A stretch of DNA of 64,000 bases, taken from the NCBI GenBank assembly GCA_965153285.1, contig OZ229114.1; one strand, written 5' to 3'. The notes under the pieces are model-generated. The model was not told where the DNA came from, made no database searches, and was given only the letters and a program-made list of their open reading frames with translations. The position numbers were made by a program, and so were the translations under genes. The DNA comes from Podarcis tiliguerta (Eukaryota). This document shows, in pieces, positions 16,737 through 32,771 of the stretch (positions within the stretch are counted from its first letter, which is position 1; each line of letters begins with the position of its first letter).

Positions 16737-17310
16737 TTTGGTATTCAGTTTGGCTAATGTAATATATCCTGAAGCAATTTCTGCGTTTGTGAGACATTTG
16801 TGGGTACACTTCTCATGCTACATTTTGCGGGTTTGAGTTTGGTTTTGGAATTATTCTGGTGGATGTATGTTTAAATGAAAATATTTTATTAATGCATCAC
16901 CTGTGTTAATGATTTGCCCCGTCCAGGGTGCCTTTTTGCAGTAATCTGGGATGCAGCTCACACAGGTTTCCATTTGAACTTTTCCCCAAAATGCCCTGTG
17001 GATGCAGACCAATTTTACTGGAAGCGTTTTAGAGTTGTGGCACCTAGGAAAAATTATATAGCATAAAGGAGTGACAGGGTGTTTTACTCAGAATGAGGGA
17101 AAGGATATATTTCTTTAATGCCACCAAATATTTAAATAGATGGATGACATGCAGCTGTTTGTCAATAAGTTCCTTTGAGAACCGTCTGCTGAAAAGACGG
17201 GACATTTCTGTGTCAACAGAGCTGAAGTTGTTTCTGCAAGTGTTGTTGATGATTGAAAATGAAGAATTGTAAGCACAATTCATCTTAGCGAACACAGGGT
17301 GTGAGTAATG

Positions 17311-17602
17311 NNNNNNNNNNNNNNNNNNNNNNNNNNNNNNNNNNNNNNNNNNNNNNNNNNNNNNNNNNNNNNNNNNNNNNNNNNNNNNNNNNNNNNNNNN
17401 NNNNNNNNNNNNNNNNNNNNNNNNNNNNNNNNNNNNNNNNNNNNNNNNNNNNNNNNNNNNNNNNNNNNNNNNNNNNNNNNNNNNNNNNNNNNNNNNNNNN
17501 NNNNNNNNNNNNNNNNNNNNNNNNNNNNNNNNNNNNNNNNNNNNNNNNNNNNNNNNNNNNNNNNNNNNNNNNNNNNNNNNNNNNNNNNNNNNNNNNNNNN
17601 NN
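17311..17602. other. Assembly gap (292 N)
   Basis: Run of N. Confidence 1.
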
Positions 17603-20364
17603 GTCAAAGGAGGAAACAACATAGGAAAGAGATGCTCTATAAGCTTCAACAGAGTGGCAGGCGAGTGCTGTGCCGTTTCAGTGCCTAATACTAATGACTC
17701 TGGAAAGCTGAAATGACAAAAAGATGTACTAACAGCTATTCTGAGAGCACTACTGTGTAAATGAACCAACTGGAGAAACATGGAGGAGAACTGGTTTGTG
17801 GTTATTGGTAGGATGTGGGTTCTTATTTTTGCTTGAAACTATTGATTTTCAAATGAAGAAGGAAATATTAATTTATTGTTACAATCTATGCTTACCATAA
17901 TGCAGTAGATTATGTCAGCCTTTTTTTTTAAAAAAAAAGAAGAGCTAGACATGTCGAGAGATCTATCAGTTGGAGAAGACAAACAGAATTCTGAAACAAT
18001 TCACCATTGTGTTGAATTCTCGTTTTTAGGTAACATGAACATTATTCCTTTCATCACCATAATAAGCACTAAGTTGATGGACTTAAAGATTGCATCCTCA
18101 TTCTTCCCATTAGTAGTGGGGTGGGTGGGTTGGTTGTAAGCTGTGTTTCACAATAGCAGTCCTGCAGGCTCAGTGTTTGCCAAGCCCTGAAAGCAAGATG
18201 GTTCTCTGACCTGTAAAGGATGTACTCTAGGCTAGTAAGCATTTTTTGTGATGTGCTTATCTTAGCCTGACCTCATTGTCTAGTAAGATACTGAGTGAAG
18301 GTCCCAAAAAACTCGTGTGGACTGTATTTATTTGTCTCAGTTATCTTTGTTAGCCAGTTGAAAGATATGTTGATTTTTCTCTCCAAGGTTTTATAAGCAC
18401 AAAAACCAACTGTGAACAGTTAAACTGTGTTGTTACAGTAGTATTAATGTCCTTTACAGCATGTTCCCCTTACTACTGCCTCACTTTCCCCCAAAGCATT
18501 TGTCACCTTCAGTTTAGGTAGCATGCCTAGCATTTCATAGGGTTTTCGTATATGGTTCTTTACTAGGCCCAAACTGAAGCAGTTTTTGCAAATCTTTCAA
18601 AGATTTATTATGCAACATTCTCCTTTGTTTCCAAACAAGCCAAGCTTTTCTTGTTTCTTTATTTCCCTTTGTTTGTCATAGTGAGTTTCTTTTAATTAAA
18701 AGCATGAATAATCTAGTATGGTTTCATTTGCATTTGTGATTGAGGTCTTGTTCACACTTTGTGAATTACTCCTGGGGTCTCCACTCAGGGTTTGCCATTC
18801 AGTCTTAACCTGCAGTGTGAGCGGAGGGCAATTGACACTGAAGACTTCTGATTTTGAATGATGTTATCAGACATGGAGTGGCATTGTTTTTATTTCCATG
18901 TTCATGTTGTACTTATAAAGGATTGTTGACACTTATCAGTTGTGGCTGAACAATATTTCAATCATCGTGCAATTTACATGTCAAGGCCCTTTTTACCTGG
19001 CAAGAAATATATTTTAAAAATTAATTGTAACATAACACAGCAACAATAGCCTGCTATGAGGCTAAGTCAACCTATCAATTGATTCTTCTGCTATAGAGCA
19101 CCACCTTTCAGAAGCTTAATCTTTTGCCATTTGAACTCTGAAAAGCTGATCCTTTTTTTTAAAAAAAATGCAGCAACTTGGAACTAAAAGTATTGTGCAA
19201 AACACTTCTGGGTTTATTTAGCATCACAGACAACAAATCTATTCTCCATTCAAGTAAAGACTTGTAATGAATCCCCATGTTACCTTATATAATATTTTTG
19301 TATCAAGGGTTGTGCGTACATAGCAATTGCACCACAGAAGCACAGAGCTCGGGGCTGACTGAACATACGCTTCAGCCTGCAAATCATGTTGTGTTGTTAT
19401 CCCAGGCATTTTTACTCAGAATTGAGTCACGCTGATGAGTTGCTGTCTAGTGAGGGCACTCGGGATTATAGTTGTAGCATCTAAAACATTTTTCCCCGTG
19501 TCCATTTGCTCCAGGTCTTAGCAACCTTCTTTTGAGTGCTGATGCAGCAGTACCCACAAGCTAACGTAGCACAATCATTAGATTTTGGTTGCATCTATAA
19601 GCACTGGATAAAAGTTGTGAGTTTTTCCTCTTGCAGCGGTTGGAAACCTGCTGCCTAGTCAACCATAGACACTCTGATGTTTGGCAACATAAATTGCCAC
19701 TATTTCTGTCTCCAGACCACCAGCCCTCTGACTTCTCAGTGGGACTTTTAGCTAACTGTTTACCTTCATACTCCAATTACTCTGGTTTCCAAATATGTAT
19801 AAATCTACAGCTTTGGGGAATAACCAAAGTCAGAATTGATGATGGAAACTTGGGTTGCTCAAAATATTGATTTAAAACAAGGATTTGAACTGGTTTATCT
19901 TTTAAAGGATTCTAGAAATGTGTTGTTTAGACTCTTTTAAAAATGCCCTCCTAAAAGTAAATGGCACTTCAGCCCATAACCCATTTGAAGGTTTACTAAC
20001 CCTCAGTCTGTTGACAATACAGTCTATTTATGTTGTCATTTTTCCTCAAGAGCTACAAACACAATTATTATTTAAGAATCTGCAAGTGAGTCAAATTAGT
20101 GGTATTGCTTTTCAGCAAACCACATGCAAAATGTATATGGTTTTGATTTCTGCTTTAGTGGTTCACTTATCATTCTCATTTACAGAGTGGCTTTTTATCT
20201 CTGTGTTTTGTGCTCTTTCAAAGCTAGTTTTCACTGAAGTTCATCACTCGTGGTTTTTACTTGCAACACACCTACAGAGTATATCTAAGACTATGTTTTA
20301 ATATGTCTTACATACATATTTTAGATTAGCTGTAACATTATAATTTTCTTATTCTCTTTCATGG

Positions 20365-22230: not shown

Positions 22231-23357
22231 TAATAGTCAGCTTATGCTTTTGGTATTGGCTGGTGTGTTCCATGTGGCCAATATTTGGTTAACAAGAGCT
22301 GGGAGGGAAAAGGGCATAACATATGACCTAATTTATCTTCCTGGGGTGCTGGGACAAAAGGTTCCAGAGGGGAAGGATCTTGGAATTCTCCAGCTCATTG
22401 ATAGGCATGAAATTAGTGGCAGTCAGATGAGGAATCTGTTGCCAGTTGCGCTATTTTGTTCCATGTCAGCTTCTTTTATGTACAAGAAATTCCTGTCACG
22501 GAAGACTTTATTTCCATTTTACAGCCTTCAGCCTACTTGTTAGAATGTTAGACTTTGGCCTTTCAGGGCTAGAAGGTTTCCTTCATTAACTGCAGGAGCA
22601 TGTTTTTATAGGCTCAATAAACATCTGAAAATTATCTGTCCCAATTAATAAGTATGTGATACCCATCCCACTTGTCTGGTTTGCTTATAGAAGTTGATTA
22701 AAATAATACTGCCATGCCATTATTGCCGAGAAATCTTGTGCTCTTTTTATATACAACCAAGTTATGAGTTTTCAAAGCCATCTGTATGAAAAGATACGCA
22801 AAACACTTTGCACTGTTATCGCTTCATCTGCTTGTCTTTCGTTTTCACATTCTGCACACTTATTGCAAGTCCTTCGGACTGCTCCATTTTAACAAATAAA
22901 TAAAGGAAATCCCCCCCCCCCCCGATGATTGAATTTCACATTTGGGCCTAGGCCAGTTTCCGAGCTTTGGTTTAGAATGTTAAAGTATTTTATTACTATT
23001 GAGTAGTTAGAAATTCTACACTTCTCCCATGTGGAAGGCCACAGTTCTTTGCCCTCCTGAAAGAAGAAACTGGATGTGTTAGTGCCAGTGGGTGGCTTGA
23101 GAAGTGCAATTCAGGCCCTTGTGTCAGTTATCAGCAGAAGTGGATTGCACCTAAGTGTGCCTGGAGGAGTAGACTAAGCAGTGAGGAAGGTTTGCAGCTC
23201 AGTTGCAGAGCCTATGCTTTGCATGCAGAAGGTCCCTGATTCTTCTCAAGCACCTACATGTAGGGCTGGGAGAGAACTTTGTCTTGAAACCTTGGAGAGC
23301 TGCTGCCAGTCAGTTCAGATAATGCTGACCTAGATGAAGGGAAGCTTGCCTGTATAG

Positions 23358-23738
23358 GGAGGTTTTTTAAGGTTTAATGTTTTATTATGTTTTTATATAC
23401 CGTATTTTTCACTCTATAAGACGCACCAGACCACAAGACGCACCTAGTTTTTGGAGGAGGAAAACAAGGGGGGGGGGGAAATATTCTGAATCTCAGGAGC
23501 CAGAGCAGCAAGAGGGATCGCTGCGCAGTGAAAGCAGCAATCCCTCTTGCTGTTCTGGCTTCTGGGATAGCTGTGCAGCTTGCATTCGCTCCATAAGACG
23601 CACACACATTTCCCCTTACTTTTTAGGAGGGAAAAAGTGAGTCTTATAGAGCAAAAAATACGGTATGTTGGAAGCTGCCCAAAGTGGCTGGGGCAACCCA
23701 GTCAGATGAACGGGGTACATGTGTATTATTATTGTTTT

Positions 23739-23778
<40 letters not shown>

Positions 23779-23780
23779 TT
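23358..23780 (+). mobile_element. 5'-truncated L2-type LINE 3' end with (TATT)n tail, split by a MITE
   Basis: Reads GTTTTATTATGTTTTTATA|TATGTTGGAAGCTGCCCAAAGTGGCTGGGGCAACCCAGTCAGATG...GGGGTA, followed by (TATT)10 at 23741-23780. This is a typical lizard L2 terminus (from recall). Confidence 0.65.
23400..23663. mobile_element. Tc1/mariner (Tc2-type, CCGTA-ended) MITE, 264 bp
   Basis: TA TSD (23398-99 / 23664-65). TIRs are CCGTATTTTTCACTCTATAAGAC / GTCTTATAGAGCAAAAAATACGG. Internal 31-bp hairpin at 23494-23564. Confidence 0.92.
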
Positions 23781-23838
23781 AACTTCCTATGTTCCTATAC
23801 AAAATAACATTACAGTGGTACCTCAGGTTAAGTACTTA

Positions 23839-25500
23839 CCGTATTTTTCGTCCCATAGGACGCTCCGTCCCATAGGACGCACCTACTTTTTTGGGGGGGA
23901 AATAAAGGAAAAATTTTTTTCCCTTTATTTCCCCCCCAAAACCAGGTTGGGGAACAGTGGGATGGCGGCGCTGCGCCTCCCCGCTGTCCCCCGAGCTTGT
24001 GGGGCTGGCCGATGTCTGCCCGGCGCAAGGCTTGCTGACGCTTGAGCGGAGCACGGGGCGTCCTCCGAAGGGCGCCCCGTGTTCCGCGCTGCAGGCTGCC
24101 GCCCGCAAGCCTTGCACGCGGGGGGGAGTTCTCCCCCGGCGCGCAAGGCTTGCTGACGCTTGCGCGGAGCACGGGGAGTCCTCCGAAGGGCGCCCCGTGT
24201 TCCGCGCTGCAGGCTGCCGCCCGCAAGCCTTGCACGCGGGGGGGAGTTCTCCCCCGGCGCGCAAGGCTTGCTGACGCTTGCGCGGAGCACGGGGCGTCCT
24301 CCGAAGGGCGCCCCGTGTTCCGCGCTGCAGGCTGCCGCCCGCAAGCCTTGCGCGCCGGGGGGAGTTCTCCCCCGGTGCGCAAGGCTTGCTGACGCTTGCG
24401 CGGAGCACGGGGCGTCCTCCGAAGGGCGCCCCGTGTTCCGCGCTGCAGGCTGCCGCCCGCAAGCCTTGCGCGCGGGGGGGGTTCTCCCCCGGCGCGCAAG
24501 GCTTGCTGACGCTTGCGCGGAGCACGGGGCGTCCTCCGAAGGGCGCCCCGTGTTCCGCGCTGCAGGCTGCCGCCCGCAAGCCTTGCGCGCGGGGGGGAGT
24601 TCTCCCCCGGCGCGCAAGGCTTGCTGACGCTTGCGCGGAGCAGGGGGCGTCCTCCGAAGGGCGCCCCGTGTTCCGCGCTGCAGGCTGCCGCCGGCAAGCC
24701 TTGCGCGCCGGGGGGGAGTTCTCCCCCGGTGCGCAAGGCTTGCTGACGCTTGCGCGGAGCACGGGGCGTCCTCCGAAGGGCGCCCCGTGTTCCGCGCTGC
24801 AGGCTGCCGCCGGCAAGCCTTGCGCGCGGGGGGGAGTTCTCCCCCGGTGCGCAAGGCTTGCTGACGCTTGCGCGGAGCACGGGGCGTCCTCCGAAGGGCG
24901 CCCCGTGTTCCGCGCTGCAGGCTGCCGCCCGCAAGCCTTGCGCGCGGGGGGGGGAGTTCTCCCCCGGTGCGCAAGGCTTGCTGACGCTTGCGCGGAGCAC
25001 GGGGAGTCCTCCGAAGGGCGCCCCGTGTTCCGCGCTGCAGGCTGCCGCCCGCAAGCCTTGCGCGCGGGGGGGGGAGTTCTCCCCCGGCGCGCAAGGCTTG
25101 CTGACGCTTGCGCGGAGCACGGGGCGTCCTCCGAAGGGCGCCCCGTGTTCCGCGCTGCAGGCTACCGCCCGCAAGCCTTGCGCGCGGGGGGGAGTTCTCC
25201 CCCGGTGCGCAAGGCTTGCTGACGCTTGCGCGGAGCACGGGGCGTCCTCCGAAGGGCGCCCTGTGCTCCGCGCTGCAGGCTGCCGCCCGCAAGCCTTGCG
25301 CGCCCAGGGGAACTCCCCCCAGGTGCGCAAGGCTTGCGGATAGCTTCCTGGAGCCTGGAGAGCAAGAGGTGTCGGTGCGCACCGACGCCTCTCACTCTCC
25401 AGGCTTCCGCGAAAACCTGCATTCGCCCCATAGGACGCACACACATTTCCCCTTCATTTTTGGAGGGGAAAAAGTGCGTCTTATAGGGCGAAAAATACGG
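23839..25500. mobile_element. Tc2-type MITE, 1662 bp, carrying an internal hairpin minisatellite
   Basis: TA TSD (23837-38 / 25501-02), whereas the empty site in the 32526 copy has a single TA. TIRs are CCGTATTTTTCGTCCCATAGGACGC / GCGTCTTATAGGGCGAAAAATACGG. Subterminal sequence is shared with the 23400 MITE. Confidence 0.94.
24026..25337. repeat. GC/CpG-rich tandem array, 11 x 117-120 bp plus a partial unit, two hairpins per unit
   Basis: CAAGGCTTGC unit starts at 24026, 24144, 24262, 24380, 24497, 24615, 24734, 24852, 24972, 25092, 25210 and 25328 (partial). Confidence 0.97.
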
Positions 25501-25954
25501 TAATTTGTTCAGGAGGTCCGTACTTAACCTGAAACTGTTCTTAACCTGAAGACCACTTTAGCTAATGGGGCCTCCTGCTGCTGCCACACCACCATAGCAC
25601 AATTTCTGTTCTCATCTTGAAGCAAAGTTCTTAACCTGAAGCACTATTTTTGGGTTAGCAGAGTCTGTAACCTGAAGCATATGTAACCTGAGGTACCACT
25701 GTATTAGGAACCCTAAATAAATACTAGGACTACTAAGCCTTCTAAGAACTTACTGTGGCCCTTAGGAACTCTACTCAAGACTCCTCAGGTGGTTCTTGTA
25801 TAACAGAAGAAACATTGTAGGAATGTGATTTCCATTCTAAGACAAATAATTCGGCCTCTTTGTAATCTACTCACAGTCATCATTCTCTGCATACTGGCAA
25901 ATGTGGAAGCTTTCCTGTTTATGGTGGACTGCAGTAGTGGGTCAAAGCATAGAG

Positions 25955-26194
25955 CAGGGGTCAGCAACCCTTTTCAGCCGTGGGCCAGTCCACCGTCCCT
26001 CAGACCATGTGGTGGGCCGGACTATATTTTGAAAAAACTATATGAATGAATTCCTGTGCCCCACAAATAACCCAGAGATGCATCTTAAATAAAAGGACAC
26101 ATTCTACTCATGTAAAAATACCCTGATTCCCGGGCCGGATTTAGAAGGCGATTGGGCTGCATGCGGCTCCCGGGCCTTAGGTTGCCTACCCCTG
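25955..26194. mobile_element. hAT (Charlie/Buster-type) MITE monomer
   Basis: TIRs are CAGGGGTCAGCAACC / GGTTGCCTACCCCTG. 8-bp TSD GCATAGAG / GCATACAG. Same family as 38497-39062, in the opposite orientation. Confidence 0.9.
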
Positions 26195-32525: not shown

Positions 32526-32771
32526 CAGTGGTACCTCGGGTTAAGTACTTAATTTGTTCCAGAGGTCCATTCTTAACCTGAAACTGTTCTTAACCTGAAG
32601 CACCACTTTAGCTAATGGGGCCTCCTGCTGCTGCTGTGCCGCCGGAGCCTGATTTCTGTTCTTATCCTGAAGCAAAGTTCTTAACCTGAAGCACTATTTC
32701 TAGAAGGGTTAGCGGAGTGTGTAACCTGAAGCATATGTAACCTGAAGTGTATGTAAGCCGAGGTACCACTG
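32526..32771. mobile_element. Tigger/pogo-like MITE, intact 246 bp
   Basis: TA TSD. TIRs are CAGTGGTACCTCGG / CCGAGGTACCACTG. Contains repeated TAACCTGAA subterminal motifs. Confidence 0.93.

Follow-up and report, generated by a model that had tools for sequence, protein, structure and literature searches.

The window studied here is the whole 64-kb stretch (64,000 nt) of Podarcis tiliguerta contig OZ229114.1, and its positions 23839–25500 are occupied by a complete 1,662-bp non-autonomous element that is bounded by terminal inverted repeats (TIRs) and lacks any coding signal. Three quarters of this 1.66-kb element consist of an 11-copy, GC-rich, hairpin-forming repeat of 118 bp. The ends can be written as CCGTATTTTTCG...CGAAAAATACGG: the motif CCGTATTTTTCG lies at 23839–23850 on the plus strand and its exact reverse complement at 25489–25500 on the minus strand (12 of 12 positions), and when the comparison is extended to the whole left repeat (23839–23863, plus strand) and the whole right repeat (25476–25500, minus strand; placed by terminal-motif match and end alignment), 22 of 25 positions agree. 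With at most one mismatch allowed, CCGTATTTTTCG occurs four times in the 64-kb window, where 0.03 matches are expected, and the four are both ends of this long copy and both ends of a 264-bp sister copy at 23400–23663.

The element sits inside another small inverted-repeat transposable element with CAGTGGTACCTCAGGTTA ends, a MITE (miniature inverted-repeat transposable element) that it splits into a left part (23813–23838, plus strand) and a right part (25501–25701, plus strand; recognised by sequence comparison and by the read joint). An uninterrupted paralog of this host MITE at 32526–32771 (plus strand) provides an empty-site reference: it reads AAGTACT-TA-ATTTG, with a single TA, while the present locus reads AAGTACT-TA-[1,662 bp]-TA-ATTTG, the two TA copies lying at 23837–23838 and 25501–25502. 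The same empty-site joint, 23836>25501, was seen in all four sequencing runs that we mapped (described below), three of them short-read contig sets from different organisms and one a set of RNA reads; it stems from the many other copies of the host MITE. Taken together, the TA flanks, the empty-site paralog and the read joint make the boundaries and the TA target-site duplication (TSD) exact, and they indicate that the element was inserted as a unit by cut-and-paste. The host MITE belongs to a family of about 230–250 bp with internal repeats of CTTAACCTGAAG, which is even more abundant than the inserted family.

With its TA duplication, its TIRs, its lack of coding capacity and its high copy number (by a rough depth measure), the element has the properties of a MITE of the Tc1/mariner superfamily. 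Its length exceeds the usual miniature size (below ~600–800 bp) due to the array; 347 bp are left when the array is taken out, a size closer to the 264 bp of the sister. Near the ends there are four copies of the motif CCCATAGGACGC (CYATARGACGC), at 23852–23863, at 23869–23880 (a second direct copy, just after the left TIR), at 25427–25438 and, on the minus strand, at 25476–25487, so that two direct copies stand at the left and one direct and one inverted copy at the right. The sister has the same layout, and to judge by this arrangement the four copies look like an inverted repeat/direct repeat (IR/DR)-like set of possible transposase-binding sites. No DDE/D transposase with matching ends was found in the 64-kb window by Pfam or blastn, and a literal search of papers for the TIR sequence, aimed at the Tc2-type label first given to the ends, returned unrelated primers only.

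The array runs from 24023 to 25337 and was described by Tandem Repeats Finder (TRF) as 11.1 copies of a 118-bp unit with 97% matches and 0% indels; the count of 11 units is that of the assembly, since the array is not covered from end to end by any read or contig. It is placed centrally between the TIR-bearing flanking modules, which is the defining feature of tandem-repeat MITEs, it has the 13-mer GCGCAAGGCTTGC at both of its edges, and neither the sequence nor TRF gave any microsatellite adjoining it. Two kinds of hairpin alternate along it. Hairpin A is 21 bp long in seven of the 11 units (19 Watson-Crick and 2 G.T pairs around a 4-nt loop) and has one or two Watson-Crick pairs fewer in the remaining units. 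Hairpin B, which lies across the unit junction, is ~21–22 bp long with a ~7-nt loop and mostly contains 20–21 Watson-Crick and 1–2 G.T pairs, going down to 19 Watson-Crick pairs and 1 G.T in the last unit. The linkers between the hairpins measure 15 nt (TGCAGGCTGCCGCCC) and 8 nt (TGACGCTT). A piece of two units folds with z = -13.8 with respect to dinucleotide shuffles, and an inverted-repeat search returned arms of 42–55 nt, 71–79% complementary, about both the A and the B centres.

These longer arms extend the symmetry of the unit well past the two stems. When the consensus unit was cut at its two dyad centres and one half was aligned with the reverse complement of the other (63 + 55 nt), 46 of 55 aligned positions were identical, with gaps confined to the linkers, and the alignment score of 48 compares with 11 for the best of 1,000 shuffles. 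By this comparison the 118-bp unit is an inverted dimer, built of two imperfect copies of a ~59-nt segment. A tandem array of an inverted dimer must have two dyad centres in every period, and hairpins A and B, which mark these two centres, are a single invention.

Comparison with the sister copy (23400–23663, plus strand) separates what belongs to the family from what is peculiar to the long copy. The sister, 175 bp upstream, is flanked by TA, has no array and folds (z = -10.4) around one central hairpin of 34 bp. The long copy without its array, which we call the chassis, aligns with the sister over the left 70 nt, over the central hairpin H4 and over the right ~100 nt. H4 (25346–25411, with arms at 25350–25407 in which 25 of 29 positions agree and a fold of 28 pairs) is the homologue of the single central hairpin of the sister (23490–23566, 34 pairs) and is therefore an ordinary feature of the family. 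The arms of this hairpin resemble each other more within a copy (76–79% identity) than between copies (58–69%; arm boundaries are rough, 23490–23566 versus 25346–25411), and the differences between the copies are mirrored on both arms. The arms therefore change together, which suggests that one arm is converted by the other or synthesised anew, and that the two do not drift independently. The 11-bp subterminal hairpin TTTCCCCTTCA/TGGAGGGGAAA at ~25446–25472, an addition to the hairpins listed earlier, is also part of the conserved right chassis.

The right arm of hairpin H1, the hairpin H2 and any trace of the 118-bp unit are missing from the sister. H1 is a near-perfect palindrome at 23885–23945, with arms at 23889–23908 and 23922–23941 that are complementary at all 20 positions and four further A-T pairs contributed by the loop. 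Its left arm is homologous to the chassis of the sister, and the right arm repeats this left arm perfectly in inverted orientation; such a build is what a fold-back or template-switch duplication would leave behind. H2 is an imperfect GC hairpin at 23949–23991 (-16.7 kcal/mol as DNA). It probably belongs to the common core of a subfamily, because the depth bins that contain it are ~10x deeper than most array bins (see below). Neither H2 nor the central hairpin of the family could be recognised as the source of the 118-bp unit: local alignments of the unit to the sister and to what lies outside the array in the long copy were no better than those of shuffles, and H4 itself stands intact beside the array and is unrelated to the unit.

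A preliminary description of this locus had presented it as a TIR-bounded mobile element with a mostly hairpin interior, built of five hairpin types of different sequence. Folding, TRF and arm matching recovered hairpins 1, 2, A, B and 4, the linkers and the array, all of them in place, and the general picture stands: between the TIRs and the TA duplication, a fold of the whole element with spans limited to 70 nt or less contains 24 hairpins of at least 10 pairs and has 77% of its bases paired, and an unrestricted fold reaches 83% and -778 kcal/mol. The count of five independent types has to be given up, with A and B coming from one inverted duplication and H4 being the central hairpin of the family.

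The neighbourhood of the two copies is itself rich in repeats. The sister is inserted in another high-copy repeat (joints 23397>23664 in all DNA runs, with flank depth in the millions), and the stretch between the two MITEs contains a (TTTA)n microsatellite (23736–23780, 11.5 copies). Further high-copy repeats are found beside the site at 23114–23327 and 25896–26100 (contig depths of 1e5–6e6), and single-copy behaviour is seen only at about 22900–23113 and 25789–25895. Blastn with both copies gave no further members of the family in the 64-kb window outside 23380–25520, and two scans of metagenomes (one with a chassis 21-mer, one with a degenerate TIR) gave no copies in those collections.

The units of the array are not interchangeable. 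Neighbours share variants (units 1–2, 6–7 and 8–9), and the summed distance between neighbours is 37, compared with 49.8 for permuted unit orders (P=0.003; P=0.03 without the last unit). The last unit (25214–25337) is the most divergent, with a mean distance of 10.9 against 3–5 for the others. Such likeness of neighbours together with a diverged edge is typical of arrays whose units are duplicated and lost locally, by slippage or unequal exchange, while the edge units escape homogenisation. The same pattern bears on the concern that the array might be an artefact of assembly, either a collapsed or expanded repeat or the result of fold-back chimeric reads, a concern that arises since palindromic, GC-rich repeats are hard to assemble and the stretch is spanned by no contig or read. 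Ordered shared variants and a diverged edge unit are not produced by artefacts, intact TIRs and a TSD enclose the array, and the independent short-read contigs of three organisms likewise contain unit-like sequence; we therefore regard an artefact as highly improbable.

These contig sets come from the runs mapped on 22900–26100 at 90% likeness or more, namely X1 (organism A), X4 (organism B), X12 (organism F) and the RNA run X23, which consists of bulk RNA sequencing (RNA-seq) raw reads of organism F, an organism related to, and different from, the source organism. Contig depth on the unique flanks was ~65–130 in X1 (where the flanks are near-identical), ~26–30 in X4 and ~65–110 in X12. Chassis bins reached 2.5–10.5 million in X1, which by this rough measure is ~1e4–1e5 times the depth of the unique flanks and therefore indicates a very abundant family. 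The bin with H2 and the start of the array reached 0.8–1.2 million in X1 and X12, and the array bins ranged from 630 to 69,000 in X1, from 74 to 94,000 in X12 and from 0 to 5,500 in X4. Considering that a single copy corresponds to ~70 in X1, eleven units at a single locus could account for ~770, and several array bins are far above this value, so that unit-like sequence must exist at other loci, in at least three organisms. The possibility, raised at the outset, that the array is confined to this one locus is thus contradicted by multi-copy depth in all three.

The array also stands out in base composition, with 75% GC compared to 41% for the window, and in its CpG content, with an observed/expected (o/e) ratio of 0.99 compared to 0.27 for the window. 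With 1,315 bp at these values it passes the sequence criteria for a CpG island (>500 bp, GC >55%, o/e >0.65), and such a 1.3-kb island in so CpG-poor a window could suggest that the MITE carries a mobile, unmethylated CpG island that acts as a promoter, enhancer or insulator wherever it lands. The chassis of the same copy, which is not repetitive, is as undecayed as the array (o/e 0.94), while the sister, the older copy, is half decayed (0.52); youth of the long copy therefore suffices to explain the CpG content, and a protected island is not required. Transcription data do not favour an island either: X23 gave no transcription starts and no reported pile-ups of molecule beginnings or ends over 22900–26100, at the element or beside it, and RNA depth on the unique flanks was effectively zero (0–0.2). 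A regulatory island of this kind is accordingly unlikely in our view.

The flank depth of 0–0.2 also means that the locus is not in an expressed transcript in the X23 sample, which bears on an earlier proposal that the array, if transcribed, is a polycistronic hairpin RNA, that is, a microRNA (miRNA)- or small interfering RNA-like cluster carried by a transposon. Several observations speak for this idea. There are 22 near-identical stems of 21–22 bp, the two-unit piece folds far better than its shuffles, many miRNA-like Rfam matches appear below threshold, and RNA of the plus strand is more stable than that of the minus strand (-46.8 vs -38.0 kcal/mol for hairpin A and -1156 vs -1078 kcal/mol for the array), with plus-strand hairpins 4–9 kcal/mol more stable than their minus-strand counterparts. 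The strand difference arises because the two non-Watson-Crick pairs of hairpin A are G.U pairs on the plus strand, and it could in principle reflect strand-specific selection on G.U pairs. Counted over all hairpins of both copies, there are ~8 G.T against 4 A.C events, a difference that is not significant; the independent events are few because all copies of hairpin A descend from one unit.

The remaining signs of an RNA role fare no better. At E<=1 there were 77 Rfam matches, all of them far below the gathering scores (the best at 38.5 vs 76), of a generic hairpin kind and on both strands, as would be expected for any hairpin. Animal primary miRNAs need stems of ~33–35 bp with sizeable loops to serve as Drosha substrates, and the stems of 21–22 bp and loops of 4–7 nt seen here fall short of this size; no curated miRNA family was matched above threshold. 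MITE-derived miRNA genes are known as well (for example, the Made1/mir-548 idea), where a whole MITE folds into one long hairpin with an adequate stem; the likeness is that a palindrome could give a hairpin RNA if transcribed, and the difference lies in the short stems here and in the RNA-seq, which lends no support. Mean RNA depth on the array bins was 0–5 in X23. Summed over the eleven array bins it came to ~13, compared to a DNA depth of ~300,000 in X12, a ratio of ~4e-5; on chassis and host-MITE bins the same ratio was 0.4–1.9e-4, so the array appears under- rather than over-represented, and this one bulk RNA run of a related organism shows no enrichment of it relative to DNA depth. (The host MITE itself had an RNA depth of 750–1,100, the highest in the stretch covered by reads.) An RNA-device function of the array is not supported by these results, and we consider a hairpin-RNA cluster very unlikely.

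The other way in which the array could be expressed is as a repetitive protein, given that stop-free frames of 314–538 amino acids (aa) cross it, the longest (538 aa) on the minus strand. None of these gave a Pfam family above threshold, 118 is not a multiple of 3 and the units vary from 117 to 120 nt, which makes the frame rotate from unit to unit, a sequence of 75% GC is naturally poor in stops, and RNA depth is near zero; the repetitive-protein reading is effectively refuted. More generally, no convincing exon was found among the open reading frames (ORFs) of at least 90 aa in the window. One of the frames elsewhere in the window, an ATG-initiated ORF of 245 aa on the minus strand (17044–17781) with no Pfam match, crosses the only N run in the window (17311–17602, 292 letters).

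Taken together, these observations make it likely that the element is a young member of a very abundant family of non-autonomous MITEs of the Tc1/mariner type (TA-duplicating), with a GC-rich palindromic minisatellite in its interior. The course of events might have been as follows. Within one lineage of the family, fold-back or template switching in the course of repair or replication would have added an inverted duplicate to a segment, and the same process would also account for the perfect palindrome H1, in which a left arm from the chassis is joined to a new right arm. The resulting palindromic unit, bracketed by the short direct repeat GCGCAAGGCTTGC, could then have been multiplied by slippage at replication or by unequal exchange, either of which is favoured by hairpin-forming DNA. 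Transposase supplied in trans would move the whole cassette, so that arrays would be carried to new sites and remodelled in place, and the CpG richness would reflect youth, with no need for a function in the host. The preliminary description had proposed that the family repeatedly creates or collects palindromes and then amplifies them. At least three palindromes (H1, H2 and the unit) are indeed missing from the sister, and so arose or were acquired in the lineage of the long copy, and the unit was indeed amplified in tandem; on the other hand, A and B are not separate acquisitions, and H4 is ordinary for the family.

Several points weigh against this explanation. The 118-bp unit is similar to neither the chassis nor H2, and could instead come from captured foreign DNA. 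The greater stability of the plus-strand folds is not predicted by a pure DNA model, even if it can be traced to only 2–3 independent substitutions. We infer the fold-back and slippage steps from the anatomy of the element, and the transport of arrays to new sites from read depth, where summed contig depth is not the same as copy number and array bins differ 100-fold among themselves. And, as noted for the unit count, no read crosses the array from end to end. A bolder version of the young, palindrome-carrying MITE is that the family systematically makes palindromes from its own interior, via fold-back synthesis in transposition-linked repair, and has in this way scattered hundreds of cruciform-prone, CpG-island-like minisatellites through lizard genes; we hold this to be improbable. 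Were it true, the arrays could be hotspots of recombination or replication, regulatory islands free of methylation or sources of strand-specific hairpin RNA, and the excess of G.U over A.C would be a trace of a hairpin-RNA role.

Even on the more modest reading, the element is a clear case, in a vertebrate, of a transposon that both carries and seeds a minisatellite, with exact boundaries and a plain sister nearby, and the inverted-dimer build of the unit points to duplication by fold-back and subsequent slippage. Should the family be as abundant and as young as the depths suggest, it supplies lizard genes with a good deal of DNA that is length-polymorphic, hairpin-forming and rich in CpG, and it would be useful for marker work and for observing in nature how palindromic repeats grow.

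The architecture had at first seemed to be without description. No lizard-specific account of such an element was found in searches of the literature; MITEs with tandem arrays, however, have been published, and in some of these every repeat contains a palindrome, while one is a Tc1/mariner element from a vertebrate (PMC3879986, PMC12628747, PMC9659126). They include DINE-1, SGM, mini-me, PERI and MINE-2 in insects and pearl and DTC84 in bivalves (PMC3879986), and in this whole group flanking modules with inverted repeats hold the core repeats, arrayed at the centre, in the manner of a cassette, as they do here; 'cassette' is the term used for the flanks of DTC84. Members of the pearl/DINE-1 group have an AA duplication and a microsatellite tail, are possibly Helitron-like and usually carry six units or fewer, whereas the present element has a TA duplication, no microsatellite and 11 units (PMC3879986). 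Membership in that group can thus be rejected, the TSD being TA rather than AA and the array having no microsatellite beside it. In DTC84 each core repeat contains a palindrome near the unit junction that has been proposed as a hotspot of changes in array length; that palindrome measures 12 nt, while the present unit is palindromic throughout (PMC3879986).

Two further cases bear comparison. Foldback elements such as Tetris of Drosophila virilis likewise unite tandem repeats and inverted symmetry in a non-autonomous DNA element able to seed satellites, and there the tandem repeats build long TIRs, in contrast to the TIRs of 12–25 nt, the central array and the uniform orientation of the units seen here (PMC4079207). 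Xstir, on the Xmix MITE of Xenopus laevis (Hikosaka and Kawahara 2004, cited in PMC9659126), is similar in being a lineage-specific tandem repeat that arose from or within a vertebrate MITE; as summarised in the citing paper, it derives from part of the TIR of Xmix and forms satellite arrays, unlike the present array, which is internal and unrelated to the TIRs.

A close parallel is miDNA4, a MITE of the Tc1/mariner type from Xenopus tropicalis, in which a satellite motif occurs as a monomer or as an array of variable length, and for which a model of growth via flanking microhomologies exists (Scalvenzi and Pollet 2014, as described in PMC12628747 and PMC9659126). In the passages of these two papers that deal with it, miDNA4 resembles the present element in being a vertebrate non-autonomous element with an internal repeat, in having short direct repeats at the array edges that are proposed to drive growth, and in being a MITE that acts as both vehicle and seed of a satellite. 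Compared by description, the microhomologies that flank its repeat are AT-rich, while the present array is bracketed by the GC-rich GCGCAAGGCTTGC, and a unit in the form of an inverted dimer with two 21–22-bp hairpins, as we see here, is not stated for miDNA4 in those passages. The present element nevertheless works like the known tandem-repeat MITEs, and it represents a known kind of selfish growth rather than a new category.

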